64,000 bases of DNA from Penicillus capitatus. Its lineage: Eukaryota; Plantae; Chlorophyta. This document shows positions 33,801-55,049 of this stretch, piece after piece (the first letter of the stretch is position 1; every line of letters begins with the position of its first letter). The stretch lies in NCBI GenBank assembly GCA_965649825.1, contig OZ287710.1, positions 124,001 through 188,000 of the forward strand, given 5' to 3'. Below the pieces are notes generated by a model. The model searched no databases and was not told where the DNA came from. It worked only from the letters and a program-made list of their open reading frames with translations. Position numbers and translations under genes: made by a program.

Positions 33801-35745
33801 TTGAAAGTAGTTCTGAATGCATTCTCTGAAATGCGCCGTCTTGCTAGAATCATCCAGTGTGGTCATCTCTAACACTTCCCAATAGAGTTTTAGCAGAGGC
33901 TCCACACAGTCCACCTAGCAGTCAGTCCACGTATTGAGAAACGGAAGTCATGGTCAAGGACAGTGACAGAAGTGTCTTCGCGTTGAAGAATGGCGTGAAG
34001 AATCATGAAGTTCTTGGCAACATAACCAGGACTGCCAATTCCTTTGCTGATGCGATCAATGACGTAACGGACGTGATCCAGATGCATCTTCTTGGAAAGA
34101 GCTGTGGTCATTTGCACCATGTTATCTCTCAGACCCTCAAAAACGCCATCCTGCATAGCATAGGCATATGAGAGTGCGCTCGATGGATGACAGAAAGAGA
34201 TGACAGGTTCGATGAGAGACCACAAGGCATCGATGTGTTCGGTCTCAAAAATCTTGCACTTCACCATGCGTTCCAAAACAGCCAGAACCTAAATTATAAA
34301 GAGTGAGAGTGGAACCAGCATCTAGGCGTGGTTGAACGTGTTCTGCATAGTGCACTTTTTCGACATGTGATGCAAGCATCATACCAACGATATCTTCCCG
34401 ATTCAGCCACATTTCTAATTCCTGCGATCACACGAATGACGTGACGTGTCATGACTTATCGATCGTCGTGGTACTTGAAGGGGGATCGGATCGTCAAAGA
34501 CAGCGACTCCGTCTAAGTAACTCCCCAAACAGCGCACGGCTGTAAGTCTGCCCTTAAAGTTTCCTTGTTTGAGTTCCTCCTTCAGGACATGTCTCCTGAA
34601 CACGCCCACCTGCATGATCCCATTAATGACATATCCTTCCACACGGCAGGAATCGACCGTCTCTTCTGCAGAGGTAGCAGATTCCGTGAAGAAGACAATT
34701 CTGTACAGATGCTCCATGAACGTTGGAGAAGAGAGAAATGCGAAATTAAGATTCTCGATCGGACTCTTTCGAACATCAGACATCGCCATTTTCACCACAT
34801 CATTGAGAGGGCGAAGCATTTCCTTGTCAATCCCCGAGCATGTCATCTATCCACATCGCTCTCCATCTCCGCCGCAGAAGAGGTGTCCCGTTACTTGAGA
34901 AAAGAGTGTCAGAATAGACTCCAAGAGTTCTTCCGATGTCGGATCCATGTACTCTTCGTACACTTGGTGAGAGAAGAACTGCTCCAGCATCTGGAACAGA
35001 CAGGTGCTCACTCTTTTCGTGAGAGCAAAAGAGTGACCGACTTTGCACACAATTCCGAGACAACTGTCACAGATCTCCACAGCCAGCGATTTGGGCCACA
35101 TGTCATCAGATGGATCTGAAGAAGAGGCTCCAGGAGAACAGGAGGGAGATGGCACATGATCCGAGAAGTGCAGGTTCATATAGATCATTGTCTCCGTGTC
35201 AAACAGCAGATCCAAACATCTGAAGGCTCTGAATGCCAATTCTGGAAAAACTTTGAAATCGATCTCCGTTGTCTTTTCGAGTGATGTTAAGGCGATTTTG
35301 TTCAATAGTCGACCCCATGCCACGAATTCAGGCAGTAAATTCTCCGTGGGTTCTTGTCGGAGAACCTGTTTCCATAAGATGGGGAAGATTTGCGTCAGGA
35401 ACTCCCGACTTGGCCGAAATATCTCGGCTGTCAACCTAACTCCGAGACGACGTTCTTAGAAGATGGCGTGTCGTGATGCGGTGTATAGGGTTCTCACCGT
35501 TCCGCCTCGACAAATGTCAGAATCGCTTGGAGACACTGTCGCGTTTCAGCTGCATGCAAGACGAAACGCCGGTCGACCCGAAGTCCTTTTTTCACCGTTT
35601 CGAAGATTTCAAGCGAGTATACTTCAGATACGTCGTCGTCTGGATAGTCCTCTGTTTCATTCGTCATCTCGTGACCGGAATCGCTCGCGGAACTGAGCGA
35701 ATCGGACATATGACTCGCGGCGCCATTCACAGACTCGGCACTCAT
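27857..35745 (-). CDS. Very large ubiquitin carboxyl-terminal hydrolase (USP9X/USP24/USP34-like)
   Basis: Chain of minus-strand exons. Cys box GLQNGGATCYINSIIQQLF, QHDALEFF, LVLQLKRFE, His box YHLKGIVVHTGEIDGGHYYSFIKER, WWRFDD; long helical N-terminal region. Confidence 0.9.
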
Positions 35746-35855
35746 GGAAACAGCGACGACGACGAACGAACGAACGGCACGAACGCACAAACAGGCAACG
35801 AAAGGCAAGGCAATGGACCAGACGTTTGAAATGAAAAGCATCTAAGTGAGGCGCC

Positions 35856-36349
35856 ATGTTCCCGGTATCTTCCTCTGGGCTACGCCTGTCTCTCGGTGAT
35901 GTCCCGACGGACATCCATGTCAGTCGCTACGCAGATCGGCTTCTGTGTTTCGTGACCCAGACAGGCACATGTGGATCCATCCTTCAGGCAAAGTGCGTTT
36001 GGGTTGTTCAAAGGCGGCGAACGACATCGATGGGGTGCAGAACGGTGGTTCGTGGAGACGGGAGCGTCGATGTGGTGATCGAGCCTCTGTTCGGTCGACG
36101 CGATCGCGAGGAGATGTTTGTTTGTGCAAAGAGATTGGCATTAAAGTTTCGCCAAGAAGCACAAGACTCGAGGTCTGTTTAAAGAATCCGTCCGCCCCCT
36201 ATACAAATGACAGCTTTATATGATAATGTAGACCCCTCATTCTGTGCATGGCCTTGCATGAGCTTCCTCCACACCAGATGCAAAAAACTGTCAACGCGGC
36301 TCATGCTGCCTATCTCAGACTGCCAGCGAGAGACACAGAAAGAGTATAA
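35856..36349 (+). CDS. PSMG3: Proteasome assembly chaperone 3
   Basis: TDIHVSRYADRLLCFVTQTGTCGSILQA, VIEPLFGRRD, RPLILCMAL match the PAC3 pattern. Confidence 0.8.
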
Positions 36350-36453
36350 AAACAAAAACACAGAACCTCATTAAATCCAACGGTACTGCACCTCTAAGTC
36401 TTCGAAATAACAACGACAACAACAAAAAAACGATGCGGGCTTGTCCACATGCC

Positions 36454-37962
36454 TCATTGGGTCGCATTATTGGATGTCATACTATTAACGGGGGTAGGTA
36501 TCTGTCCAGACGTCGAAGTGGTTGTGCTCAGCATGTCTGGAAGAGAGGCCAACTCAGCCGCCGGCGTCTCGGGCGTGACAGTGACGTCTTCACCCGCATC
36601 CATAGCAACGGCCGATGTGAACGCCAGTAGATCTGGTTTTTGTGGATAGGAATGCACCATCAGTGTTGCCACTTGTTCAGGTCTCAAGATCTAAAACCAC
36701 AACCCACATGACTTCTATCTCTCTCAAATCGCATTGCTCGATGTCACCTTATGGATAATGGTTGAGCAGAACTGAAGCATTGCATTGTTCTCGACTCTGA
36801 GGATGTCTCGCAGTCGAATCACCGTCTGGTTTGTCTTCAAATGTTCCAGTGCGATTTTGTGTGCCACGGTCTGCGATACAAGTATGGTCTGAATTGTTAA
36901 ATGGAGCTTCTTTCTTTCATCCACCAATCCCTGCAACTGATCGATATACAGTCGTCTCAATTGCACCAGTTCTGTCTTCTGGATCTCGGACAGCTTTAAC
37001 TGACCCAGAACGGACTGCCATTTTCGCAGCTCCTCAATTTCTGAAGTATGATACTCGCGAACAATCCAGACTTTGCAAAGCAGTGGATTGATAACGCACA
37101 GCTTCATGAAGACTTTGCTCACTTCTTCGATCAATTCCCGAATTCGATTTGTCGATCCCCCCGTACTGGAATTAAACTCGACCAATGCTGACGATATCTC
37201 TGTCACGTATGTATGCCAAATCTGCATAACATCTTCAGGGGTCATCTTCTTCAGAGACTCCGTGCTCAGTTTCAATTCTTTGCCCTTGATGGCAGTGAGA
37301 CTCAGCGATGAACGACGGGTGCCGAGTTCCTTTTCGTGTTCAGCCTGATCCGATTCTGCCGCTTGCTGTTGCTGCACAAGCTTGATATGCTCGTCTCGCA
37401 TAGCCAAGACCTTCTCCAGGAGACTGTTATGGCTCTGCAGAGATGCATTCTCCATCACCAACTGCTCAACGCGTTGTTCAAGAGTCGTGATCTGTTGATG
37501 CAATTCATTGATCTTTGCCTTCTGCCGTTCGCGAAAGCGTTTTTGAGCCATACGATTCTTCTCTTGCACTTGGGAATGCTTGGCATCTGTCTTAGAGATG
37601 GCGTTCCGTGGCGTGGAACTGTTGTTCCGTATAACAGTTGCCGATCTTCTGCTGTTTTCGTAGCCAACAATCGCAGGTTTTGTATCCACTATTCCCAACG
37701 CTGTCGCGGATGGCCGATTTTGGAAATACCCTTGGTCCGGCGCCACGAACTGTGGCGTTTCCAGAAACGGCTGAGTGGCATTCAGGTCATAGGTGTCGCC
37801 ATAACTGCCTTGTTGCTGCTGTTGCTGCTGTTCTTGCATTGCGGGCGTCACCACGCGACGCTCGTTTAATGTCACAAGATAACTCTGCAAGGCTTCGTCG
37901 ATGTCCAGGAAGTTGTCAACGAGCTCCACAGATTTAAGACCTTCGCCAGATAAAGCGTCCAT
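36454..37962 (-). CDS. bZIP transcription factor (chlorophyte type, long helical C-terminus)
   Basis: QEKNRMAQKRFRERQK basic region plus heptad Leu/Ile zipper; poly-Q; one intron before the last exon. Confidence 0.9.
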
Positions 37963-38145
37963 TCACTTAATCGATGCTCCTGGCGATGCACCGGACGAGA
38001 GTTACGCGAGGATGAGATAATGAGGGATGCGCGGTTTTGAGTAAAATGACGGAAAACCTCCTCTTCTTATCAAATAATCATTGCGTCATCCTTAGTAAGC
38101 CCTTCTATCAACAGTTATGAAAAGACAGCCACGTGTCCAATCGCA

Positions 38146-39614
38146 TCAGCGATGACTTGTCCCGAACTGTGCAAAGAAGTCAGGGGAGACGTGGTTGGCA
38201 TAGATTTGGTCTCGCTCGTTGTCTCGTTTAATCTTTTCTCTCATTTGCCATTCGAGAACGGAGGCAGTGTCTTTGGCATGCTGGCGACGCAGAATCTCGG
38301 CATGACGGGCGGCTACACAAGCAGCACGCTGCACCGCCATCTCTTGTCGCGCCATCTCCACGCTCTGTGCCTCGCTCTTGATCTTCGCAAGCCTCTTCAC
38401 CTCACACTGTCGTCTCCTGTCGGATTCGATCGCTTGTAGCTCATCGGCACGCATGCCTTTCCAACATTCTTTTCTTGCCTAATCAAAGAGGCTCAAAATG
38501 CAAAGCGTATAGAGTGCATGTCGTGCGTCTTTACGTTTTCGGGAGACGCTTCGTTGAGGAAGAGAGACTCGGCCATACTCTCCAGTTCTTTTGTGTTCTG
38601 CTCCTTTTCAAATGCTCTGCAGGAAAGTGCATTCTGTTGCTTCGTCTCGGCAAGTTGCTGATTGTTTGTATCGATTTCGCCACGATAAGCGCGTCGCCGT
38701 TGTTGTTGTGCTTCGGCCGTGCGCAAAAGCACAACCTGTTGAGCACATATCCGTCCACAAACGGCATAGATTTACAAATGACACAAACATCTTGTTGCTG
38801 AGCCACATGCGCTCTGTGTTTCGCCTCAAGCATTTCTTCAGCGTTTCTTTGTTTCCACTCCTCCTCCTGCTGTTCCCAGTTCGCTCGATTTTCATTCTTC
38901 TGCTCTCGCTCCCTTTGTGCCGCCTACAGAACAGAGATGTCCCAGGAATTCGAACGCCGAAGAGTAGATAGACCCCGAGATCTTCGCCGTCAAACTGCTG
39001 CAGAGACGAGGGGCCGCAACGCGGATCGTCGTCCCCCACTCGACCCGGCAAGTCGATACGCAGCTGGTCACCTCGGTTCAAATCCCATTCACGACGGTCG
39101 GTTTTTTTCTGGTGTTTTGAGCGAGACACGACAGACTGCCCATGCGAATGAATGCATGCTCGGTGGAACCTGTTGCTCTGCCCAAAAGCGTCTGTGATCC
39201 AAGGCGACATCTCTGCGTTGTTGTCTGGCTTCCTCCTGCAATTGACGCACACGGCGGCTATGGTTGCGCTCGATCTGTGCCTCAACGCTATTATGACAGC
39301 GCAAGACATGGATGAAGCGCAATGGAGAGCGCTCCATATTACTTATCGGCCTTGTGTTGTGCAGCCACTCTCTGTGCTTTTTCGGCGACTTGACAATTCA
39401 GCGCTTCAACGTCTATCTGCGAAAACATGCATTCGTTGCTTGTTGAGATTCCAGTCGTCTTTTTGACGGCAGAATGGCGCGCGCCGCTGTATCATGGCGT
39501 GAACAGGATGCCGTCCGTCTCTTTCCTTACCCCAATGGTTCGTCGCTTCGAATCGAGCATGGACCCGAGTCTGTCCGAATCATCATTGCGAATTTGAGCG
39601 ACCAGCTTGCCCAT
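38146..39614 (-). CDS. RIB43A: Flagellar protofilament ribbon protein RIB43A
   Basis: N-terminal LDSKRRTIG, coiled coils, and C-terminal IYANHVSPDFFAQFGTSHR resembling the RIB43A terminal motif. Confidence 0.82.
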
Positions 39615-40016
39615 CCCGCGGCAAAGAGTCCACTCTTCACGGATCAATGTTTGTAATGAACAATGTGAACATGTCAAACGACGTTAAGACCACATGATAA
39701 TTCAATGAGGAAACCCATCGTCACCATATCAGGCGACGTATCCGCACGGACCTAAGAAGAGCGAGGGGACTGTGAAGTTCTAGATAACAATGCGCTTGCT
39801 GTACGTCGTCTTTTTATTGGCCAAGCTGTGATGGATGGAATGCCACTCCGTCGCGGAATAGCGTCCCTGTAAGAGCGAATTGGTATTCAATTATTCTCCC
39901 GCCGTGTTCGCTTGCAAAGTTTCACAATATTCGTTGAAAAGTTAGCGAATCTTACAAAGGTGTTGTCGTTCGAACGCATTTCTTTGCGTTTCCATAGGGT
40001 GACATGCGGAGAGTGT

Positions 40017-40631
40017 TCACACACCACCGCAGACTTTGCCACCACCTTGCCGAGAAAGCAGCCCTGCGCAATTCTCGCTATCTTCGTCCCACAGCCAAGC
40101 AGCACATCCTCCATAGACGTTACTATCGACTACACAGACACTTCGCCACGTGTCCTTCAAAAGTGATGGTTACTGTTGCGGCATGTTAGCTCGCATTCTT
40201 GTTCAGAATCGACCAACCCGAGGGCAACCGCCTTGATTTCGCAGCCATCGCTGTCTGCTTCGGACCCCACCGCTTCGTACACGGTCTCCACGAAGTTGTT
40301 CAGAATGGTGCCGTTGATGCCGCCACAGTGTGTATAGTCATCAGAGTATCTGGTCGTTTCAATGATATAGCCATGACAGGCTTCTTTCTGCGGACTTAAT
40401 TCCCACGCAACACAGCGCTGACGTTTCCTTACGTCTGCAAAAAAGATAAGCATATATGTGTTCCGTTTTGCAGATGGGCTGCGGCGACGTACAGTTGGTA
40501 CATTGTTCGGCACACTCGTTGGAGAACAGTGTTTTTTGGATAAAGGTGCGGCGGTAATCACATTCGGCTTGACAGACTCCAAGGCACGTCACTGCCACGA
40601 AGATAATCGTCGCGAACCAAGAGAGATGCAT
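40017..40631 (-). CDS. Secreted Cys-rich protein A1, two PAN/Apple-like modules
   Basis: Signal peptide MHLSWFATIIFVAVTCLGVCQA; 12 Cys as 2x(C..CxxxC..CxAW..CxG..C); two phase-1 introns (58 and 44 nt). Confidence 0.85.
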
Positions 40632-41017
40632 TGTCAACAAAACAGACTGGTAATATCTTCCAGGGGGTCGGCTTTAATAACGAGCAGTGGGATAGGGAGA
40701 AGTCAAAAGCCACGCTGCCATTGGCGCGACAGCTGGCAAGCAGCTACGCTTTTGCAATAAACGCACTCGGACGGCAAGGAATTTTGAATGAAAAATTGAT
40801 AAAACGCTGAGCTGTACACCACTTCGCGACTTCAGCGCAAGTACTTCGTCGCGAATTTCAGCGTCAACCTCCGCGTCTTGCCCTAACTTGACACGAATAT
40901 CACTGCTGGCTCATTTGTCGGCAGCTAGACGCCGCGTGCTGCAGGCAGCATAAGAGACTGTCTTTTGCCTGAACCTCAGTTATTGTCTTCTCGCTTTGAG
41001 TGCTATCCTTCACAAGA

Positions 41018-41688
41018 ATGAAGTGGTTTCCGACTCGGTTATTTATCGCGTGCTTGACTATCGGCGTCGCCTCGGCGCACATCGTCTGCAAATATCAACG
41101 CATCAGTCTTGGTATAACAAAGACGTCCGCGGAGTGCCAGACAAAGTGCATCGCATGTAGACACACTCTTATTCCAGTCAGTCTCGTCGAAACAAAACGT
41201 TTGCGTGTTGTAGTCGATACTGATGACCCAGAAACGACACGGGATTGCATTGCATGGGGTCATAGCTTAAAAAATGAGAAATGTACTGGATGGATACTGG
41301 AGAACGACCCAGAAAGGTACAGCGATTTCTACGGTGTTGGCTCATACTCCGACGGCTATTACGACGACTACGAAACATGCGTCCTGGTGGCGCACACAAA
41401 CATCAGCGTCGCTCATACGAAGGGCGCCGACAACAAGAGCGGGTGTTTTTTCGAAATGGAAAACTTGGGTTACGCAGAAACACCTGAAGACTGTCAGCCA
41501 CTGTGTGAAGGACGTGAGAGCTCTCGAGTGAATTGGACACTCTATCTGAAAGTTTTGGTTTTGTTGTTTCAGTGACTAGTCAGCGTCATGGAGGTTGTCT
41601 TGCGTGGACGCATTCAGAGGACGAAGAGGCATGCCGAGGCCTCTTGTCCATGCCGACCAACCAGTACACTTCTTGTGGTCGTGCCTAG
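41018..41688 (+). CDS. Secreted Cys-rich protein B1, two PAN/Apple-like modules, Tyr/Asp-rich loop
   Basis: Signal MKWFPTRLFIACLTIGVASA; ECQTKC..CIAW..C; DCQPLC..GGCLAW..CRGLL..C; same two intron positions as A1. Confidence 0.87.
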
Positions 41689-42159
41689 ACGCTGTACGCA
41701 GTGGAACACTGCAACGTCTGTAAACAACAAAGAAATGCCGAAAATCCTGCATCGTGTGTGCGCGTGACTATCAGCCGACGGCGAACGAACAGTCTGCAAT
41801 TGGACAACCCACGTTTAACAGAACACAGAGGGAACACACAGCGCCATTCCCAGCTGTGTTTGACTAGGGAAGGCATTGAACCAAATGTCGAACGCAGCAT
41901 TGGGAAAACAGATGGCGTCTGTTGTGACTGACGTGAGATATACGTGGACGAAGAGAAACAGCCGCATTCATGCAGCAGTCGTTATCGCAAACGAAAGCAA
42001 CGGCGAATTCGAACCATTCTGCTGAAGTTCATTTGAAGGACAGTACGTACATCAACCACGCGGCACGGTCGAATCTTCTATTGTCTGAGTCGAGGTTGCT
42101 GTGATACTCGAAGGACATCGGTCGACACGTTTACGCATAAAAACACTCGGTCATACACC

Positions 42160-42846
42160 ATGAAAAATATGACGGGGGTGCTTCTCGTGCTGTCCACATG
42201 CATGATTTTCTCCACTGCACATAACGCTTGCGAATTCCAACGTGTGACATTGGGTCCCGGCAACTCTACCGATTCTTGCCATTTTCTGTGTATCAACTGT
42301 TCGTGTTTTCCTCGCTGTTGTACAAGTTCGATGGACCTCGTGGTCAGATGACGCCGACGAAGAGGAATCGACCCGTCACTGCATTGCATGGGGGTACGAT
42401 GGAGTGAGTCGCGTTTGTCGCGGTTGGCTGCTGGAGACAGAGCCAGATGACATCGACTATTTCTACGATCAGAAGTACTGGTATTACGAGGGCGGGATTT
42501 ACGACCCTACGGACACAGTTTTCGACACATGTGACCTCGCGCCTCACACTAATCTCAGTGTTGCTCACACAAGAGGAGCCAGAGATAAAGAGGGGTGTTT
42601 CTTCAAATTTGTTCATTTGGGTTATGCCAAGACTCCAGATGACTGTCGGCGTTTTTGCGAAGGCCGTGCGTTATTTCTTAACTGTCATCGTCTCTTTTAT
42701 GACGTGGTGTTTTCATTTGTGTTTTTGCAGTCGTCAGCAAGATACATGGAGGATGCCTTGCATGGAGTCACTCAGAAGAAGATCTGAAATGCGCAGGATT
42801 GTTATCCAAGCCGTCAAACAAGTACACCTCATGCGGACGCGTTTAG
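42160..42846 (+). CDS. Secreted Cys-rich protein C, third paralogue type of the same family
   Basis: Signal MKNMTGVLLVLSTCMIFSTA; CHFLC..CIAW..CRGWLL; HTNLSVAHTRGA..GCFF..LGYAKTPDDCRRFC..GGCLAW..CAGLL..SCG. Confidence 0.85.
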
Positions 42847-43450
42847 CGAGAGACCTCTTCCACATCGAAGACTCAAGCGTATCATAAAACATTTCATTCT
42901 GGTCGTGTAATCTCTCTCCCTCGTTTCAAAGCATTCGATTCAACATTTGATGGACAATCACACATCATCGCCCGTCTAGTGAATGCGGCCTTACTGCGTC
43001 CTCCCTCAGCAGAGTAATAATCATGCGACCGATAGTCGACATGCAGAAGGATGATGGAGTATCTACCCATAGACAGGACATCGCGGTTTTTAGATAAGCA
43101 TGAAGACGCATTAAACATCATGACCAGACTTGGTCGCGATGTGACACGCAAGCGCTTCGCAAATGAACAGCCAGTATTGTGACGCGAGCCACCCAATTCT
43201 GTTTGTTTTTTGCATTCGGCTTCGCCGCGACTACTGTTGTTGCTTTCTTGCGTTCGAAGGGACAATGACCGTATTACTGCTTTTTCTACTTACATGACGT
43301 CGGGGATGCTTGTCACTGTCCTCTTCGCCGTGGAGCGCATCCGGATCAGAAAATGGCGAACACTTTGAGAATAGCCGTCCTCGGTGACGGTCCCAATAAC
43401 TATCAAAACCGGGTGGTCGTCGCTTCGAAGAACCCGTTGGCCTGATCGTG

Positions 43451-43959
43451 ACGTTCATGCCGACCACATATAGAACCTCATTGCCCATTTACACAGCAAT
43501 GTCTTACGAATAGGACTGTGAAGAGTTACCATTGCTTACTCCAGAATCTCCATCAGAGACGTTGCCAAGAATCTGGGATTGAGTCCGGAAGGATGACACA
43601 AAACACGGGTGATCAAAGCCATTGGACAGGAGAAATGACGCGATAAGCAACACGATGGGCAGTACAAGCGTAGAATCGAAGTGGCCGACGTTTACTCAAC
43701 TCAGAAACCGCAGAACGCGTTCCATGTCAGAACTGCCTTCTGCCTTGGAATACACAACGAGGTGAGGACGACGTCACCTCACCGATCCTGTGAAGAGATG
43801 TGTGGCGGCAGGCCGTCAACGCCGTGCGACTGACCCAAAAACTCACAAACCAACTTTGAAGATGCATAAACTAGAAAAGAGCGATCGGCAGAGGAAAAGG
43901 AACTGGCAAAAGCAATTCAAGAAGAGGAGGAAAGAAGAGGAGGACGATTAAGAACCTGA
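43451..43959 (+). pseudogene. RPN3: 26S proteasome subunit Rpn3/PSMD3 C-terminal pseudogene fragment
   Basis: NLIAHLHSNVLRIGL*RVTIAYSRISIRDVAKNLGL..VIKAI..DVYSTQKPQNAFHVRTAFCLGIHNE|AVNAVRL..EKELAKAIQEEE. In-frame stops at 43471, 43519, 43594 and 43636, a frameshift, and a retained 50-nt intron (43762-43811). Confidence 0.85.
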
Positions 43960-44345
43960 CCATGCCAGCCATCTCACACTCTTTAATTCTGCAACATACA
44001 GCTAAGGCACTCGTCTCTCCCTCATCAGCATTCCGATCACGGCTACGGATTAAACGTGTTTGATACTCTGCTGCCAAGGGACAGTGATTGCTTAACGACG
44101 TGACAAAAGGCAGAGAGAACAATCCGAGCTGCAGCGTGCATGATTGCTCAACGCATCATCGTAGGTCGCCGGTACTATGGTAGCTGTTCCGGATTGCGCA
44201 CGAATCTGAGCTTTTTCTAACTTTGCTCCTCTTTTGTTTTCTATGTCGTCTTCCTTATGTCAATGGAATAGAGAAAACATAAAGTCGTCTAGCACGCTCT
44301 CTTTATATATTCAGCCAACTAAACCTCTGAGCGAACCATCGAGCG

Positions 44346-46968
44346 CTAAATTACGATACGTAAAAAGACACCGTCGCTGTAAATAGTGTTGTGTACAATA
44401 CAACATTGGCATCTGTTCAGAAATGATTGTGCATCTATTGCAAAAAAAGCTGCATCCTCTGTAGTCTTGAACGCTTTGTAGAGGAAACTGTACAGTTCAT
44501 CTGCATTTCTCTTGTCGTCCATTACCTTAGCTAATTCTGCCAATGGTCTTTTCGACAAATCACGCAGTGATTGACATGATTCTATCAATCTTCTGCAACT
44601 TTCTGTCACCCTTGGCATTTTTCTAGATGCATGACAAAAGTACCTGCCAATGATTAGCCACAACAAGTATATAGGACAGAAAACCACACCTGAGATTCTC
44701 GATGGTTTCATTATTACTCTCTTCGACTGTTGATCTTTTGTCTCGTCTCTCGACTACCAAAGGATCCGGCTCGGTAAAATTCCTCTTTAGATGTCTGAAA
44801 GTATGGCATGTTGCTTCTTCATTCTCCGACCAAACCAACCTACAAAATCGAGAAGACCCCGTTAGTCCATTGAGCACTGAGTGTCATCGTAGCTAAAGAA
44901 CCTTAGGGAGGAAAAACGAAGAGCGAGGAGAACGAGTGAGATGATGCATTTTGGAGACATCTCCTTATTGAACATAGGGTGGCTTGGATGATGAAACTGC
45001 CTCCCTTCGGACTCGATCAACAAGATGGAGATCTTGAATCTCTTGCACATGGCTACCATTTGATTGTCTAACCTTCCAGAATTGATGGATGCCTTCAAAT
45101 CTGGAAGGGTTTTTCTTTCTACTGCCATGTCTGTCGTTAGGATATAATCTCCCACCTGCCATATAATCTGTGTCACTGCTACTTGTAAATGTCTTACCTT
45201 GAGTTTGGACATTTGAAGATGGAATTTTGCCTTGTGAAGGCTTAACGGGAGGTGTGCTACCAATTCCCGGACGTCCACCACAATCGTTGATCTTTGTCCG
45301 TTGCCCTCATCTGGCATGATCTCTCTGTGTCCCGTTTGGACAGAAGTTGATCGTCTTCTGCGAGAGAGTTCTCTTGTCTCTTCGCTATCATCCTTGGTCT
45401 TGGCGATGTGCGAAAACACATCTCTCTCTTTCCCAATGACCCCCGCAAACGTCATCTTCTCGACAGAATTGTCGTAGTAGATGACATAACGCTTGATGAG
45501 GTTCTCCTTATTCTCCGCCTATATTCAGCTAGATGCATAATATAGCTACAAAGGTTCGTGATACCTGATAGATTTCGACTTGACTGTAGAAAGCAACGTC
45601 TGCATTATAGAAAATGACGTAGTTCGGCTGAAGTTTCCAGAGAATTAAGGAATCCGCCCCATCCAATGAATAGAAATGTACATTATGAAGTAAATTTCTC
45701 TGGCGGTCCTCCACAGATGTCTCATCTTCTCTACTTCTCACCTTCCTGCATGCAAATCGTTCGTTTAATGTTTCAAGTCAAGACTTTTCAACGAACAAGG
45801 AGGAATCCCACTTCAACGCAACGCGTTGTTTCTTCTTGCATCTTTCGTCGCCATTCTGCTCTCTTGTCCGGCGAAGGAATTCATCAAACATGTTCTTCAG
45901 TGTTCTGCCTGGATCTGCAGCAAACACAATCGCCTATTCATCCACTTTCCGCCAACATACACTAGACGTTACCTTCAACGACCCCTTGTAGCTGATTCTT
46001 GATGGACATCTCTCGATGGACCACCAAGATGGATTTCTCTGTTTCAGTGCCTTCGTCAAATGATTCCATGATCTCTTGTTGAATGTCGGAAAGCAGCTTG
46101 TGTAATGCTCCCCATTTGGGTGGAGGCTCCAATACTGGGCACAGATTAGCAGATTTGCCTAGAAACTACACGGTAAAACCCATCACTAAATGCTGTAGAG
46201 CTACCTTCGGCGACACACTCTTTCGTTCTTTTCTTTCTGTTGTCTTTCAGATTAGCACAACCCTTCGTCTTTGAAATTAAGGACAAAGACCAGTCCCTTT
46301 GCCAGTTTGAAGGTATCGTGCAGCATCCATTTTGACCGTACCCGACTGAACTTGGTCATCTCCAACTGATGGAGAAATTCAACGAGATCTAGCGATAAGA
46401 GCACCAGAAACAGTCTGTGCAACTTCTCCATGTCTGAGACTATGTTAATTGCATCCAGTCGGTCGGTTGCCATGATAGAATTTGACAAAGATTTCATCTG
46501 TCTTTCAATAATCCCCTTGGAGATTTCCAGAAGACAATTCTCCACCGCTAGACCAGAACTATGCACACACTCCCACTCGTATTTGTCCGAATGAAAACAA
46601 TCTTGGTACCAATCAATAGTGTCCGTTTGTTTGAGCTCATCCACCAGGTCCATCATAAGATCTGTGATGGCTGTTTGAATTTCCCACACGGTAAGTGTCT
46701 CTTTGTCGATTTCGACAGGACCACCTCGTTCTGCGGAGGTTAGCTGTCCAGCACTTGAGATCGCACGACCAACTGTCCTTCCGATTCTGCTACAAGTATT
46801 GCGTCGTCCGTCGGCGATTGAGCACTGCGTCGTCCGACGGCGATTGAGCACTGCGTCGTCTTCTCTTCAGAAATATCGTACGTCTTGGACACGGGACAGT
46901 TTCCGAGAAATAGATGACGATGACGGTACGGGCGCCGGCTCCTCGTTCGTTGCGGTGCTTTCTTCCAT
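44346..46968 (-). pseudogene. XPF: XPF/ERCC4/Rad1 endonuclease copy, N-terminally truncated with one apparent frameshift
   Basis: IQTAITDLM..ELK, VLEPPPKW, PNYVIFYNAD..QVEIY, VDVRE, GDYILTTDMAVERKTLPDL, LRLVWS..FRHLK..EPD, HhH-like tail. Frame break at ~46255-46263; first ~200 aa of XPF absent. Confidence 0.8.
46800..46860. repeat. 26-bp tandem repeat, ~2.3 copies
   Basis: tgcgtcgtccg(tc/ac)ggcgattgagcac repeated directly with no spacers; it spans a predicted splice acceptor of the XPF copy. Confidence 0.9.
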
Positions 46969-48771
46969 CCGTGTCCGATTGAACGCTTGGGTGACCGAGC
47001 GGTCTTCGCCGGCGTCGCCGGCGTTCTTACACAACTCACACCACGATATATTCTCCCTCTGTCAGTTCTCCTCTTCTCCGAGAACCCTTCTGCAGTCGAT
47101 CGACATCACGAGTCGTCGTAGCTTTCTTGCCTCTCGTATCATCCCTGATCCTCCTTCCAAGGTCTGTCATCCCACACAAGATCAGAGATGATACTTAGTT
47201 GTAGGTCAGTAATCTCTTGTTTGAACCTGCTTTTCGGTCGGCGTACATCGAACAGCGGAACAAGGTAAAAAGGGTCGAATTCAAAATGGGATGTACAATT
47301 TAATGTGCATATCGTCTATGAATGTCTACGAAATACGTCGAGAAGCCGGCAGCAATCGTAAATGCATCCCTACCTTCACTCAATCAGAGAAACGAAAAGC
47401 GGGATGATATGAATGTTTGGCGCAGTGGTATGAATTTGTATTTGGTGGAATGGCACATGCGCCGGTAAAGCGCGGAGTATAATGGATGTCTATGAATCCG
47501 TCCGTAATGTTAAGTACTACTTCTCTCCTCTATAGATGAATGTCAATTCGGACAGCAGTCTTCTCATCCGTTACGCTTGTCTGTTGCAACGAACAAGAAA
47601 GCTAAATAACATTAAACGCCAATCATTTGTCTTGCTCTCATTGTACAACAAATACGAGTTCCAAAAACAGCTCCATGCCAGAACTGATCTGTTTTGTCCC
47701 GTTCCGTCTCGTAACGGAAATCTCATTCTGAGAGATACAACGCATGTCCGTGAGCGTCAAGGACAGGCCTCATCAGATATGTCCAGCAAACGATTTCACT
47801 GGAATGCGACATCATGAGGAGAGAGAAGTGATCTGAAGATTCTACTTGTTTGAATTGCGGCCGTGGGTCAATCTTCCTTTGACTGTGTGCGAAGAACGCC
47901 ATCTTTAATGATCCCAGATTGGGTTCAATAGCCTCCTCGATGCTTCTGCTGTTATCTGGGTCGAAAAACGGCGCATGGTGATTTTCGGCCTCAGCTCATA
48001 GGTCAGGAGTCGTCTCACGGATATCGGATCCATGAATTCCGGATCTTGTGGATACGTGGATGACGTTTGTCAGACTACTTGTCACACATGACTCAGTAAA
48101 CCACACATTACATTCTTTTTAGTGCTTAGAAAAGTGGAAGAGTCGACAATAAGTACGTATGAATTCCAACATTGGATTCCTGGAAACTTAGCTGTCTTCG
48201 GGATTCAACATCTTTCCTCCACAACCCCAGTTTCTCGACTTGTTTGGATCAAAATCGGATATCTTCATTTTAAATCAATTCGTCCAGAAGCTACTTTATG
48301 AAGAGAGGGGAAGGCTATTTAACAAGCGTGACAGCAGTGGTCGTTCGTCATTGTCCGAATCAATCTGAACACGCAGAAGAAAAGTGAATCAAAAAACAAC
48401 GATCGACGAAACCCAGTCTGCCATAGAGGAGCATCTGTCAATAATACCACGCGATGAGTCTTGTCTCCGAACTGGCAAATGGGTATCAGCATGTTCACGA
48501 TTACAACTTTCTTTGAATATGAGAAGAAAGACAGAAATCAGATGGATAGATAGATGGAGAGCGCTCAGAATACACTATTTCACCTCGACGCCATGTCGCG
48601 CTCTCGCGGTAAGAAGACACCTGAACGCAAACGATGTTACAGATTGAGGATCTCAAACAAGGTCATCGTCCCTATTTTTACTGATGATATCACAGTGAAA
48701 GCAAGTAATTCATTGCGTTGACCTTATCATACATTTCTTCGAATTTCCATTGGGTGACATGCGGAGAGTGT

Positions 48772-49386
48772 TCACACACCACCACAGACTTTGCCACCAC
48801 CTTGCCGAGAAAGCAGCCCTGCGCAATTCTCGCTATCTTCGTCCCACAGCCAAGCGGCACATCCTCCATAGACGTTACTATCGACTACACAGACACTTCG
48901 CCACATGTCCTTCAAAAGTGATGGTTACTGTTGCGGCACGTTAGCTCGCATTCTTGTTCAGAATCGACCAACCCGAGGGCAACTGCCTTGATTTCGCAGC
49001 CATCGCTGTCTGCTTCGGACCCTGCCCCTTTGTACACGGTCTCCACGAAGTTGTTCGGAATGGTGCCGTTGATGCCGCCGCAGTGTGTATAATCGTCATA
49101 TGGGGGTATACCATCAATGATATAGCCATAACAGGCTTCCTTTTGCGGACTTAATTCCCACGCAACGCATCGCTGATGTCTCCTTACATCTACAAAAAAG
49201 ATAAGCGTATATGTGTTCCGTTTTGCAGATGGGCTACGGCGACGTACAGTTGGTACATTGTTCGGAACACTCGCTGGAGAACAGTGTTTTTTGGATAAAG
49301 GTGCGACGGTAGTTACATTCGGCTTGGCAGACTCCAAGGCACGTTACTGCCACGAAGATAATCGTCGCGAACCAAGAGAGATGCAT
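48772..49386 (-). CDS. Secreted Cys-rich protein A2 (paralogue of A1)
   Basis: Intact frame and introns as in A1; clustered changes ETTRYSDDY to DGIPPYDDY and YEAVG to YKGAG. Confidence 0.85.
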
Positions 49387-49774
49387 TGTCAACAAAACAG
49401 ACTGGTAATATCTTCAACAGGGTGGTTGGCTTTAATAACGAGCAGTGGGATAGGGAGAAGTCAAAAGCCACGCTGCCATTGGCGCGACAGCTGACAAGCA
49501 GCTACGCTTTTGCAATAAACGCACTCGGACGGCAAGGAATTCTGAACGAAAAATTGATAAAACGCTGAGCTGTACACCGCTTTAGCGACTTCCGCGTACA
49601 TACACAGCCCGAATTCACCATCAGCATCCGCGTCTTGTCCTAACTTGACACGAATATCACTGCTGGCTCATTTGTCGGCAGCTAGACGCCGCGTGCTGCA
49701 GGCAGCATAAGAGACTGTCTTTTGCCTGAACCTCAGTTATTGTCTTCTCGCTTTGAGTGCTATCCTTCACAAGA

Positions 49775-50498
49775 ATGAAGTGGTTTCCGACTCGGTTATT
49801 TATCGCGTGCTTGACTATCGGCGTCGCCTCGGCGCACATCGTCTGCAAATACCAACGCGTCAGTCTTGGTATAACAAAGACGTCTGCTGAGTGCCAGACA
49901 AAGTGCATCGCATGTAGACACACTCTTATTCCAGTCGGTCTCCTTGAAACAAAACGTTTGCGTGTTGTAGTCGATGCGGATGACCCAGAAACGACACGGG
50001 ATTGCATTGCATGGGGTCATAGCTTAAAAAATGAGAAATGCAGCGGATGGATACTGGAGAACGATCCAGAGGTTTACGCTGCTGACGACGATTACGACTC
50101 ATTCTACGGCGATATTTACGGCTTAGCCTACGACAGCTTGTACAGTGTCGGTTCATACTCCGACAGCTATTACGGCGACTATGAAACATGCGCCCTGGTA
50201 CCACACACAAACATCAGCGTCGCTCATACAAAGGGCGCCGGCGACAAGAGCGGGTGCTTCTTCGACGTCGAAAACTTGGGTTACGCAGTAACACCTGAAG
50301 ACTGTAAGGCCATGTGTGAAGGAAGTAAGACATCTAGAGTGAAATGGACGATCTTTCTGAAACCCTTCTTTTGTTGTTTCAGTGACGAGTCAGCGTCATG
50401 GAGGTTGTCTTGCGTGGACGCATTCAGAGGACGAAGAGGCATGCCGAGGCCTCTTGTCCATGCCGACCAACCAGTACACTTCTTGTGGTCGTGCCTAG
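49775..50498 (+). CDS. Secreted Cys-rich protein B2 (paralogue of B1, expanded Tyr loop)
   Basis: As B1, but the loop is VYAADDDYDSFYGDIYGLAYDSLYSVGSYSDSYYGDYET (+18 aa). Confidence 0.87.
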
Positions 50499-51021
50499 AC
50501 GCTGTACGCAGTGGAACACTGCAACGTCTGTAAACAACAAAGAAATGCCGAAAATCCTGCATCGTGTGTGCGCGTGACTATCAGCCGACGGCGAACGAAC
50601 AGTCTGCAATTGGACGCAACCCACGTTTAACAGAACACAGAGGGAACACACAGCGCCATTCCCAGCTGTGTTTGACTAGGGAAGGCATTGAACCAAATGT
50701 CGAACGCAGCGTTGGGAAAACAGATGGCGTCTGTTGTGACTGACGTGAGATATACGTGGACGAAGAGAAACAGCCGCATTCATGCAGCAGTCGTTATCGC
50801 AAACGAAAGCAACGGCGAATTCGAACCATTCTGCTGAAGTTCATTCAAAGTACAGTACGTGCAGAACGGTAGCTTGTCCGCCTATGTCGTCGCGGAATTT
50901 AGATAAGCATTAAGACGCATCAACGTCATGCCTGCGTTGCTGTGAGTTACGTGCCATTCATTAAGTCGAATTGACTATTAGCGAGCGATACGCCTGTCCT
51001 GTCGAACGGGTTTTCTACACA

Positions 51022-53961
51022 ATGGCAGCAGCAACAGACTTTTTGGCTTTTGGCTTTAAACACACTGACGGCCTCGACATTAAAACGCCACTCATGAAGT
51101 ATGTCACGGCCGTCTATGGCCAGGAACGCGCAGAAGATATCTCACATGATATCGACGAAGTCATGAGAAGGCGAAGTGAGGTTGCGAATATCGTCGGCGG
51201 AAAAGTGGAAGGGTCAAAAAAGGATGTCAAAGAAGTCTATGCCAGGTTGGTTTTGGAGCAGAATGGGAGACATTGCTTACCATTTGGTGTTCAGTTACTA
51301 TCGAGCCTTGTCGGTGATGGAGACCCGTTTTTCAATCAGTTCGGATTCGAGTCACGCACAGGTACCTTTCTACTGGATGTGCGCTTCGAATACCGGAAAG
51401 AAATGCACGCAATTAAATATCCATTTCGAAAAAGCGGCCGTGCTGTTCAACATTGCCATACACCTGTCGCAATTAGCTGCTCAGGGAGACAAGCAATCGC
51501 CGTCCGGATATAAGGCAGCCATGAGACAGTATCAAGTAAAGTGTAAGAAATGTGTGAGAAAGAGTGAGATATGACAAAATGCAGGAAGCGGCCACAGCAA
51601 TTGCTCAGACACATGAAGTGGCGTCGAAAGTTGACGACCCAAAACCAACAGACCTATCGACAGAGTTCTTAAACATGGTCGAGAAGTTGACTTTGGCACA
51701 AGGACAGGAATGCGTCTTCTGGATTGCACTGAATGATCAAAAAAGTCCTTTGCTCCTTGCTCGTATTGCAAAACAGGCTTCGATCCTCTATGCGGAGACA
51801 TTGGAGTACTTCTCCAACCCAGTTGTCCGCTCAGATCTGGACAAAGCATGGCAGGTATGACTTAAGTGTGCGGTGGAGGCGGTGAATGTCGAATACCGTG
51901 CATAGGACTTGGTGCAAAGCAAGAGTTGGTTGTTTGAGGCACTCTGCCAGCATCAGGCAGCAGAAGATGCTCGATTGAGACAAGATATCTCGACTGAAAT
52001 ATCGCGACTGACTCACTTGACGGAGTTGTTGCAAACACTGACAAGGATCGGGAAATTTACGTCACATTCTATACCGGAATACGTGAGACATCTGACAGCA
52101 ATAGTGACAGATCGTCTGCAAAAAGCCGAACAAGTACGCAGCAGCATCGCAGCTCTATTCAAGCAAAAGTCTATTGCGTAGGAGAATAATTCAGTCTATC
52201 TGCGAAAAGTGACACCCTTTGATCAATTGCAGAAAATTACTGGTGCCCAGCTCGTGCGGCCCAGTCCTTGCGCCTACCTAGACGCATCATCTGAACGTAT
52301 TTTCGCAGATGTCCTTCCCGCATCCATGTATCCCATCCTCTCTCCCTCTGCATGTGTCTGCTGAACTGACGTAACTGTGAACAGGATGAAGATTCTGAGA
52401 CGTTATGCTCAGTTGGTAGATGATCTCGTCCATCGCCAACAGACAAAGCTCGAAGGCACCGTCAATGAGGCACAACTCGAAGGGCTGCAGCGTCGACTAT
52501 CAGAACTGACGGATGCGGCAGCGGACAAAAGTTCAGTCTCAGTGCTGGAACCATTGAAAGGACGCTTGGAAGAGATTGAACAGTGCGGCGGATGGACGCA
52601 CATCGAAAAGGTCATGCTTCAGAAATCTTAAAGTGACTGCCAGCTGACGTCTCTCATACTCAGATGTTCGCGGAATTGGAGAAACTGAAGGCATCGGTTG
52701 CAGCAGATCTGGATAGTGTTGAGAAGGAACTAGATGAAGAAGCTGCAGAGGACGCTGAGTGTCGTGAACAGTACGGTGAGGAGTGGAAGGCCGCGATTTC
52801 TGCTAAACTGACAGGGGATCTGCGTAAAATCATTGCGTCCCATCGGTAGGTATCTTATTCTTCTGCTGAATACACTGGCGATATCGTTGCAGGGACGGAA
52901 TCGCACGTGGTGGTAAGAATGACCAAATGGTTCAGGAGAAATTGACAAGCAGCACTGAAAAGCTTGCCAAGCTTTCTGTTGCAAACTGTACGGAAGGCAT
53001 ACCAAAATTAGAACCGACCGCAAACAGACCCTCGGCTGATTTGCAGACCGTTCTCACAGATATCAAAAGTGAGGTCGGCGGTTCGCATTTCTTTAGCCAA
53101 AACACGGTTTCTAGATTCAATAGATCAGGCAAAGGCCATCTCAGATGAAGGTGTCAAACTGAAAGCGTCATTGGAAGACATGAAGAGCAAGGACGATATA
53201 TCGCCGAAGCTCGCAAAGATTGGAGAGGATGCTCATGAAGAGTTGCTCGAGACGGAAGTGATGAAATACGATGAGCTGATTCAGGCCATCGATCAGAATG
53301 TGAAAAAGCAAATGACATTGCGCGGAGACATCGACAGAGCATTCGATGACGTCCAACAGACATTCGATGACGTCCAACAGACATTCGACATAGCGGCATG
53401 GAAAGCGAAAGTCCATCAGTACTGCGAAGACGTCAAAGCAGATGTGAGTGAGCACATGGGTCATCCATCCATCACTGAACCACGCTCTGATGAATGACGT
53501 TTCTGCAGATCGATGCTTTCTTTGACATTCAAATGACTCTCGCTGGACGATTGCATTTCTACGAACAGATGAAGACGCAGCTCGGGGAGCTGAGAGATCA
53601 GACCAGAGATTTTGTTCTGCCTCGAAGAGTAGAACGAAAAGACCTCTTAGAGGTAACGCTGACCGATGCTGAGCTCTTCTATGTGTGATCTGAGCTGTGT
53701 TCAGACAATGAGGGGAAATGAAGAGTTGATGAAGACGACAGTGTCTACTGTATCATCTCCGACTTCTGTGGACAGTCCTTCTGCAGAGAGTCCTTCTTCC
53801 GCATGCAAACAAAACCAACCACCACGCATGACCCCGACGGCATTGCATGTCGCTGTAAGGACAGAGCATTTCTGTCAGCAGTCATTAAGGGATTCTGTCT
53901 TTAGATCTTGATCGGTGCCGTTGTGGTCTTCTTTCTTTTTAAACGGTTGACAGAGGAGTGA
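51022..53961 (+). CDS. BRO1: BRO1/ALIX-like ESCRT accessory protein (Bro1 + V domain), predicted C-terminal TM anchor
   Basis: YYRALSVMETRF, FEKAAVLFNIA, LTLAQGQEC, V-domain coiled coils, LAGRLHFYEQM. Last exon inferred (intron 53849-53904); unspliced stop at 53911. Confidence 0.88.
53340..53389 (+). repeat. Exact in-frame 21-bp tandem duplication in the BRO1 V domain (FDDVQQT x2)
   Basis: cattcgatgacgtccaacaga twice, followed by cattcgac. Confidence 0.95.
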
Positions 53962-54567: not shown

Positions 54568-55049
54568 ATGCGAACGAGTCGCCTTCCCTCGCGGCTGACG
54601 GACAGCGCACGGTTCTGCTTATCTCGGCGACCGGTCCCTGTCACGTGTCCCCGTTTCCGGAGCGTTGGGCCAAGGCATCGGGAACGCATTTTCAGGAAAC
54701 GAACGCTCTTCATCACCTATACCTATCCTGAACCCGAAACGGAAAAAGAGAGATCACCTCTCGATTATCCACAGGCACGTGTCGTCTCCTTACACATCGA
54801 GGCGCTCTGACAACGTCCTCTGTTTAGGAATGGGTGACGCCAGAGCCAAGTCGCCGACCCGACATCTTCCCGGAATTTGAGAAACTCGAAACCCCATTGC
54901 CCAAACCGCTCCCCGGAGATCCAGAGCAGCCAGATGAAGAAGAAGAGATCGAAAAAGACAAAGAGAAGCCGAAGCCTGAACCGGAAGAGGATCCAGAGAA
55001 AGATCCCGAAAAAGAAACGGAGGAGGAACCTGAACTCCCGGACGCTTGA
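54568..55049 (+). CDS. Small plastid-targeted Pro/Glu-rich protein
   Basis: Transit-like MRTSRLPSRL...; a GC-AG intron (54775-54827) joins ERSPLDYPQ to EWVTPEPSRRPDIFPEFEKLETPLPKPLPGDPE plus an acidic tail. It recalls a conserved plant chloroplast protein that I cannot name reliably. Confidence 0.75.

Follow-up and report, generated by a model that had tools for sequence, protein, structure and literature searches.

A Bryopsidales gene cluster encoding putatively secreted two-module cysteine-rich proteins with a PAN/Apple-like framework

What kind of protein is encoded by a cluster of five similar genes in the green alga Penicillus capitatus, and how did the cluster come to be repeated? The genes, A1, B1, C, A2, and B2, lie at positions 40017–50498 of a 64,000-nucleotide (nt) stretch of contig OZ287710.1 (positions 124,001–188,000), here called the window, to which coordinates refer unless another locus is named. 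An original prediction made from the sequence alone proposed secreted tandem PAN/Apple-like proteins laid out as a duplicated head-to-head cassette, and its sequence observation was confirmed in every checkable detail. The family is a lineage-restricted one of putatively secreted proteins bearing what is probably a divergent form of a known module type, and is not a categorically new system. The best explanation for the whole, which we favor on balance, is that these are Bryopsidales-restricted, two-module PAN-like proteins that would be secreted and act as soluble bivalent binders.

All five gene models, hand-built from three-frame translations (Table 1), give intact reading frames after splicing, and the predicted five-gene family was thus recovered. 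Each mature protein has 12 Cys in two modules of ~65 amino acids (aa), as had been claimed for all five, and a comparison of 17 modules gives the pattern C-x15-C-x3-C-x9..13-C-x-A-W-x8-C-x12..49-C. The 12 Cys and the CxAW motif are invariant across the family, the Cys in 16 full-length members that include Caulerpa proteins. A1 and A2 share 91% aa identity, while C is ~48% identical to B and represents a B-like paralogue.

Every member has a hydrophobic N-terminal 12-mer (Kyte–Doolittle 2.3–3.3) that ends in small residues (ASA|H, STA|H, CQA|E), with small residues at −3 and −1 of this signal-like segment throughout, and a hydrophobicity scan found no second membrane-like or hydrophobic segment in any member. 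The proteins probably enter the secretory pathway. The signal peptide proposed for each gene is therefore matched by a hydrophobic N-terminus with a small-residue end in all members, the assignment itself being a heuristic one. The proteins are acidic (D+E 14–20% versus K+R 7–10%), have a conserved N-x-S/T glycosylation sequon in the inter-module linker, and end 2–4 residues past Cys6 with no additional Pfam domain. In module 1 of the B, C, and D types (D being a paralogue described below), Cys5 is separated from Cys6 by a Tyr/Asp/Gly-rich loop of variable length. The loop of B2 exceeds that of B1 by 18 aa, and a tandem-repeat finder detected no repeat in the DNA encoding the loop.

All 10 introns of the five genes are GT-AG, 44–65 nt long, and in phase 1, and each splits the third codon after its module's Cys3, exactly as had been proposed for each module of each gene. 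Intron position and phase are also identical in both modules of every homologue read as DNA, including distant ones, and the module 1 and module 2 profiles align to each other with an hhalign probability of 98.1% (E 1.3e-13). Together, these results bear out the earlier proposal that one intron-bearing unit was duplicated internally, an event that is well supported by sequence comparison and placed ahead of the diversification of the family. The intron-marked, internally duplicated module thus offers a clean textbook case of exon-level domain duplication.

Intron 1 of B1 (41157–41213) and of B2 (49914–49970) is 57 nt long, in frame, and stop-free, which makes read-through possible. Both introns of paralogue D (locus L002, 6185–6238 and 6545–6598) are likewise stop-free multiples of three, and callers of open reading frames (ORFs) read through them; retention of the in-frame B or D introns would add 18–19 residues between Cys3 and Cys4 with no truncation. 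The spliced B form is backed by intron-free relatives and by Caulerpa gene models that lack the intron-encoded residues, and the read-through tails of several ORF fragments (…C-x-N-C-K…, corresponding to T/GTAAG) mark the same donor site.

The intron-free relatives come from two short JGI contigs, L005 (Ga0099817_1595392, 1–1368) and L007 (Ga0099821_1071543, 1–1194; 69% identical), whose full-length genes run colinear with the spliced models of B and C through each of the two junctions. L005 also lacks the 53-nt GC-AG intron of a downstream gene (54775–54827 in the window), and the absence of a neighbor's intron too suggests a cDNA origin. Both contigs are most likely transcript-derived, from species with a different gene order, which would point indirectly to such genes being expressed and spliced in a relative. 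Alternatively, they may represent the genome of an intron-poor relative. The downstream gene, which lies ~230–370 bp 3′ of the family genes on both contigs, is a small one (coding 54706–55042) that in the window is found 4 kb further on, past ALIX; its intron borders in the window were taken from L005.

The family appears to be confined to a narrow group of algae. Word-index searches with C and with an eight-protein alignment returned only the window organism and a sister genome. An exhaustive profile search of 1.84 billion protein representatives, using the exact exon-2 translations of nine genes (spanning module 1 Cys4 to module 2 Cys3), gave 18 matches at E ≤ 1e-3, two of which were rejected as spurious repeat proteins. 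The named homologues are all from Caulerpa lentillifera: three EukProt proteins from the exhaustive search and a fourth from follow-up, together g2250, g2251, and g2252 (consecutive gene numbers) and g4781, all without annotation. The other family matches are paralogue D, which lies on a separate contig of the sister genome and has two 54-nt introns at the same phase-1 positions, fragments from ENA and Logan assemblies, and the full-length intron-free JGI protein P0006 from L005. A metagenome locus scan with a B/C subset alignment recovered only L005 (again, as L006) and L007.

A Logan contig (L008; ERR4592244, 2912–3540 and 588–2021) carries a distant, AT-richer homologue that shares both introns, in codon position as well as in phase. 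Module 1 of this homologue lacks both Cys1 and Cys6 and keeps the four core Cys. Upstream of it, in the same orientation, is another family gene. A rough tree separates a group of A, D, and g4781 from a group of B, C, and the JGI protein, with g2250 unresolved beside the latter and modest support overall.

Sequences from at least five sources at the species level hold the family as amplified clusters. No member carries a Pfam annotation, and open-access literature on Bryopsis, Halimeda, and Caulerpa contained no mention of PAN/Apple proteins, in agreement with the earlier view that the system had not been described in green algae; its green-algal nature likewise agrees with Caulerpa lentillifera as the only source of named homologues. 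The family is real, conserved, and undescribed, and is probably restricted to the Bryopsidales (siphonous green algae).

Whether the modules belong to the PAN/Apple superfamily is harder to decide. PAN/Apple modules are ~60–90 aa long, with a core of Cys2-x3-Cys3...Cys4...Cys5, an optional outer Cys1/Cys6 pair, and disulfides connecting 1-6, 2-5, and 3-4. The algal modules show the corresponding six Cys, invariant in a set of 17 modules and in a set of 16 proteins. In a Pfam scan of 16 members, PAN_4 (9/16 members, best E 7.8e-4) and PAN_1 (7/16, best E 1.1e-3) were the commonest matches. When module and whole-protein profiles were searched against 177,635 sequences of solved structures, the top match was the N-terminal PAN module of HGF (E 0.12 and 0.06), aligned with Cys2-x3-Cys3, Cys4, and Cys5 all in register. 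As a yardstick, the HGF PAN fragment finds the plasminogen PAN module only at E 0.46, which indicates that weak scores are normal within the superfamily. Furthermore, the joint absence of Cys1 and Cys6 from module 1 of the L008 homologue is expected if these residues pair like the outer Apple disulfide.

The outcome of structure prediction was mixed. An AlphaFold two-module model of the intron-free L005 protein, built from a 21-row alignment, had a mean predicted local distance difference test score (pLDDT) of 84.1 and a predicted template modeling score (pTM) of 0.76. Each module is predicted to fold as strand-helix-hairpin-strand, the helix bearing the CxxxC and the two strands of the hairpin bearing Cys4 and Cys5, and in a Foldseek search of the PDB the top 11 matches to this model were HGF N domains. 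In such a module, disulfides would tie the helix with Cys2-x3-Cys3 to the hairpin with Cys4 and Cys5, and Cys1 and Cys6 would form an outer, closing pair.

Several results weigh against this assignment. The best Pfam match of the window proteins is PAN_1 at 15.9 bits, relative to a curated cut-off of 21.4, and all PAN_1 and PAN_4 matches of the 16 members fall below the curated Pfam cut-offs, with DUF7155, DUF4803, and defensin-like sub-threshold matches at only slightly worse E. The modeled protein is a relative 46–52% identical to B and C rather than a window protein, and the HGF N matches to it were weak (E 0.13–1, template modeling scores 0.19–0.35). A single-module model (pLDDT 82.8, with only two of five models confident) gave no PAN match in Foldseek and generic alpha/beta matches only. 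Secretion, too, was assigned with a hydrophobicity heuristic.

The strongest competing explanation is that the modules are not PAN/Apple at all and instead represent an unrelated, lineage-specific disulfide-rich fold, a convergent helix-plus-hairpin Cys scaffold that could serve any function open to a small secreted protein. It is consistent with the sub-threshold scores, with the generic matches of the single module, and with two-module Foldseek probabilities of 0.4–0.7 at root-mean-square deviations of 5–10 Å. However, PAN families were both the best and the most frequent Pfam matches, a PAN module ranked first by sequence profile (~178,000 chains) and by structure (~350,000 chains), the core Cys are in register with HGF, and bona fide PAN modules match one another no better. 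We consider the unrelated fold unlikely, though worth keeping in mind. The PAN/Apple identity put forward in the original prediction thus stands as to the Cys pattern, the compatible strand-helix-hairpin prediction, the commonest Pfam matches, and the top-ranked HGF module, and falls short in that every score is sub-threshold; the structure-prediction check it called for was similarly mixed, with HGF N domains ranking first for the two-module model of the relative, weak scores, and no PAN match for the single module. The reading of the six-Cys modules as a divergent PAN/Apple type is the best hypothesis and a likely one.

Segments of the two cassette copies are related as direct repeat families (D1–D7) of 85–100% identity, and the ~2.1-kb segment recurs at a spacing of 8755–8812 bp, close to the ~8.75 kb previously estimated. 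The A and B genes of each copy stand head to head, their start codons 386 and 388 bp apart where ~390 bp had been proposed. Identity between the copies is patchy, at 94–97% over A and where B begins at its 5′ side, only 85% in the middle of B, and 98–100% over the last B exon and its 3′ flank (41559–42051 versus 50369–50863), and this patchiness in B suggests recent gene conversion. No sixth family copy was found within the 64-kb window. Since both cassettes are also present in a 20-kb contig of an independent ENA assembly (L003; collinear with 34390–52756 at 97.6–98.8% identity), the layout is not an assembly artefact.

Comparison was also possible with a sister genome, represented by loci L004 and L001 on a contig of 2.2 Mb (ENA assembly ERZ26696514), which is ~80–87% identical to and syntenic with the window. 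The window order is RIB43A, A1, B1, C, a spacer (5.6 kb, containing an ERCC4-domain gene), A2, B2, and ALIX. In the sister the order is RIB43A, A″, B″, the remnant of a C gene truncated to its 5′ portion, retroelements (Ty3/gypsy among them), A′, B′, C′, and ALIX. Two cassettes are therefore present in both species, with C kept in different cassettes and the inter-cassette spacers unrelated; the ERCC4 gene is absent from the syntenic sister site, where the retroelements are found instead. The C fragment lies after the first sister cassette (L004 11473–11669), and the retroelements (L001 1655–6204, L004 17621–20618) include a Ty3/gypsy element with gag-protease, reverse transcriptase, RNase H, and integrase.

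The sister orthologues A′, A″, B′, B″, and C′ have open frames and the same intron positions throughout. The A and B copies group by species, and synonymous divergence (dS) is 0.20–0.21 within the genome versus 0.37–0.54 between species. The simplest reading of these comparisons is an ancestral [A B C] × 2 arrangement followed by differential loss of C and concerted evolution. Alternatively, the duplication may have occurred recently and independently in each species, which is possible because the copies cluster by species but is judged less likely; the truncated C in the sister's first cassette leads us to prefer an old duplication with gene conversion. The predicted duplicated A/B cassette was thus correct as to the A/B pair, whereas the sister genome suggests that the repeated unit once included C. 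Ratios of nonsynonymous to synonymous divergence (dN/dS) are 0.24 for A1/A2 (dS 0.21) and 0.29 for B1/B2 (dS 0.20). Between orthologues they are 0.24–0.31 overall (0.24 for A1, and 0.25 for C versus C′ of L001 at 84% protein identity), which indicates purifying selection.

The head-to-head layout underlies the model of the original prediction, in which A and B are co-expressed from their shared spacer and form an A+B heteromer, a system for recognizing gametes, self, or microbes or for assembling a wound plug. A head-to-head A/B pair with a ~386-bp spacer is kept in four of four cassettes from two species. Relatives of both the A-like and the B-like type exist in Caulerpa, which would fit an old split, albeit with weak tree support. 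The spacer itself is less telling: the four copies have a mean column identity of 88%, and between species the spacer is 80–83% identical, compared with 76–91% for introns and 84–87% for coding sequence. Because it is conserved no more than introns or coding sequence, its conservation is uninformative about a shared promoter. Moreover, all 12 Cys would be used within modules, leaving none free for an intermolecular bond, C and D have no adjoining partner gene, and L008 holds two family genes on the same strand. An A+B heteromer accordingly seems improbable.

A role as secreted, cysteine-stabilized alpha/beta (defensin-like) antimicrobials, encoded by an amplified, fast-evolving cluster and controlling the bacteria found on and inside siphonous algae, is a little more doubtful again. 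Sub-threshold Pfam matches to AtDEF-like (three members), SLR1-BP (three), and a scorpion short-toxin family (two) would fit such a role, as would a scorpion neurotoxin among the weak solved-structure matches and the combination of small secreted proteins, variable copy number, and loop length changes. The cysteine-stabilized alpha/beta scaffold, however, is a small cationic peptide in which a helix CxxxC is bonded to a CxC on one strand. In the algal modules, which are at least 64 aa long, Cys4 and Cys5 are 11 residues apart on separate predicted strands and do not form the scaffold-defining CxC, the proteins are acidic, unlike most defensins, the toxin- and defensin-type matches are confined to two or three members each, and dN/dS of 0.24–0.31 gives no sign of an arms race. 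Finally, the reading of the genes as decaying duplicates or gene-prediction artefacts without function, for which the lack of an annotated product in databases and the merely fragmentary ORF calls might speak, is effectively refuted by intact frames in five window and six sister copies, dN/dS well below 1, 12 Cys invariant out to Caulerpa, and intron-free, probably transcript-derived relatives.

The favored explanation, secreted two-module PAN-like proteins, can be set out as a sequence of events. Internal duplication of a unit in which the phase-1 intron was already present would have produced a two-module gene, followed by diversification into A-like and B/C-like types. The cluster (a head-to-head A/B pair followed by C, all repeated) would since have evolved by tandem duplication and differential loss, shaped also by patchy gene conversion and by changes in Tyr/Asp-loop length, under purifying selection. 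Its products would be small acidic proteins entering the secretory pathway and consisting only of two tandem ~65-aa six-Cys modules each. Two modules of a binding type, with no enzyme domain, membrane anchor, or free Cys, suggest soluble proteins that act in the manner of lectins or adhesins, binding bivalently to a glycan or protein ligand of the wall, extracellular space, or vacuolar sap. By analogy, this is the likeliest mode of action that we infer.

Siphonous green algae are giant single cells that seal wounds and re-aggregate cytoplasm within minutes, and they carry dense bacterial floras. To our knowledge, their surface-recognition and plugging proteins are largely unknown beyond a few Bryopsis lectins, and the present family supplies a concrete set of candidates for such roles. 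One could speculate that the Bryopsidales have a binding system of their own, extracellular or vacuolar, with A, B, and C as its co-regulated partners, in which, upon wounding of the giant cell, the bivalent PAN-like proteins would agglutinate organelles or wall polymers and their Tyr/Asp loops would then be cross-linked oxidatively or bind Ca2+. This scenario is a long shot; if true, it would add a second, lectin-like arm of wound-plug or protoplast formation beside bryohealin and caulerpenyne chemistry. If the function is instead ordinary wall structure, the result is a useful annotation and nothing more. A PAN/Apple identity would extend the module to a compact 64-aa form in chlorophytes.

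Table 1. Features of the gene cluster in window coordinates
Feature	Position	Strand	Exons	Remarks
Gene A1	40017–40631	minus	40631–40493, 40434–40174, 40129–40017	170 aa; phase-1 introns of 58 and 44 nt
Gene B1	41018–41688	plus	41018–41156, 41214–41513, 41573–41688	184 aa; phase-1 introns of 57 and 59 nt
Gene C	42160–42846	plus	42160–42298, 42348–42665, 42731–42846	190 aa; phase-1 introns of 49 and 65 nt
Gene A2	48772–49386	minus	49386–49248, 49189–48929, 48884–48772	170 aa; copy of A1
Gene B2	49775–50498	plus	49775–49913, 49971–50324, 50383–50498	202 aa; copy of B1
A1/B1 divergent intergenic region	40632–41017			386 bp; 5′ untranslated regions and presumed bidirectional promoter
A2/B2 divergent intergenic region	49387–49774			388 bp; ~95% identical to the A1/B1 spacer
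Duplicated segment, copy 1	39962–42051			A1, spacer, B1, B 3′ flank
Duplicated segment, copy 2	48717–50863			A2, spacer, B2, B 3′ flank
Spacer between cassettes	43121–48715			5.6 kb; holds the non-family ERCC4-domain gene

The surroundings of the cluster are ordinary. Rfam and tRNA scans gave no matches. The window has a G+C content of ~49%, intermediate between Bryopsis (45.9%) and Ostreobium (52.4%), and is nuclear eukaryotic DNA with long exons and tiny GT-AG introns, and its other genes encode an organellar-type RNA polymerase, ClpP, Pumilio, eIF3c, a ubiquitin hydrolase, a bZIP protein, RIB43A, ALIX/BRO1, F-box/LRR proteins, and a signal peptide peptidase. The RIB43A gene (38608–39309, minus strand), encoding a flagellar protofilament ribbon protein, adjoins the cluster; its presence implies that flagella are made at some life stage, which fits flagellate gametes or zoospores. 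The gene in the spacer between cassettes is a multi-exon, minus-strand gene (~44346–47200) with an ERCC4 nuclease domain of the XPF/MUS81 type (E 7e-13), in a region of lower G+C content (44–47%). Within it lies a 26-bp tandem repeat (46800–46860; 2.3 copies, 97% matches), at which L003 is apparently 52 bp shorter, and the copy number is probably polymorphic.

How, then, does the family compare with known systems? With the PAN modules of HGF and plasminogen (PAN_1; PDB 3hmr, 3hms, 1nk1) it shares the order of Cys2-x3-Cys3, Cys4-x-A-aromatic, and Cys5, predicted in the algal modules to lie on a helix and on hairpin strands, respectively. The algal modules are shorter (~64 aa) and come without kringle or protease domains, and the likeness was found through scores below significance. 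The Apple domains of factor XI and plasma prekallikrein are likewise tandem six-Cys modules with an outer Cys1-Cys6 pair. Each is encoded by two exons, the intron between them recurring at one position from domain to domain, much as an intron interrupts each algal module. These domains, however, are vertebrate and ~90 aa long, occur in sets of four, and are joined to a serine protease, and they gave no match in our searches. The plant G-type lectin/S-domain receptor kinases combine B-lectin, S-locus glycoprotein, and PAN domains with a transmembrane helix and a kinase, whereas the algal proteins have no other Pfam domain or membrane-like segment and terminate just past the last Cys.

Closer to home, the Bryopsis wound and aggregation lectins comprise the F-type BPL-1/bryohealin, the H-type BPL-3 and BPL-4, and BPL-2, the last reported only in Bryopsis (bioRxiv 10.1101/2023.11.22.568388). 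They resemble the present family in belonging to the same algal order, in gene-cluster amplification, and in being proposed carbohydrate binders. A Pfam scan of the 16 members to E ≤ 10 returned neither F-type nor H-type lectin domains. BPL-2 is reported from Bryopsis alone, unlike the present family, which also occurs in Caulerpa.

The closest functional analogues are secreted proteins with PAN/Apple modules that bind glycans or host surfaces: the tandem-module microneme adhesins of apicomplexans, such as Toxoplasma MIC4 and P104 (PMC3261864), and oomycete CBEL, which combines PAN with CBM1 (PMC3532174). It is this analogy that lies behind the proposal of a bivalent binder. Unlike the algal proteins, they have more modules or extra domains and no Tyr/Asp-rich loop, and none was among the solved-structure matches (E ≤ 10) or the exhaustive-search matches.

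In architecture, the nearest counterpart may be Ss-Sl2 of the fungus Sclerotinia sclerotiorum, which is reported to be secreted, to belong to the cell wall, to carry a pair of putative PAN modules, and to act in sclerotial development (PMC3338822). No sequence relationship between Ss-Sl2 and the algal family was detectable in the exhaustive profile search, and the sclerotial role of this fungal protein has no obvious algal counterpart. Both are lineage-restricted without a close homologue of known function, and Ss-Sl2, with a signal peptide, two PAN-like modules, and nothing else, is the closest architectural analogue of the proteins encoded here.

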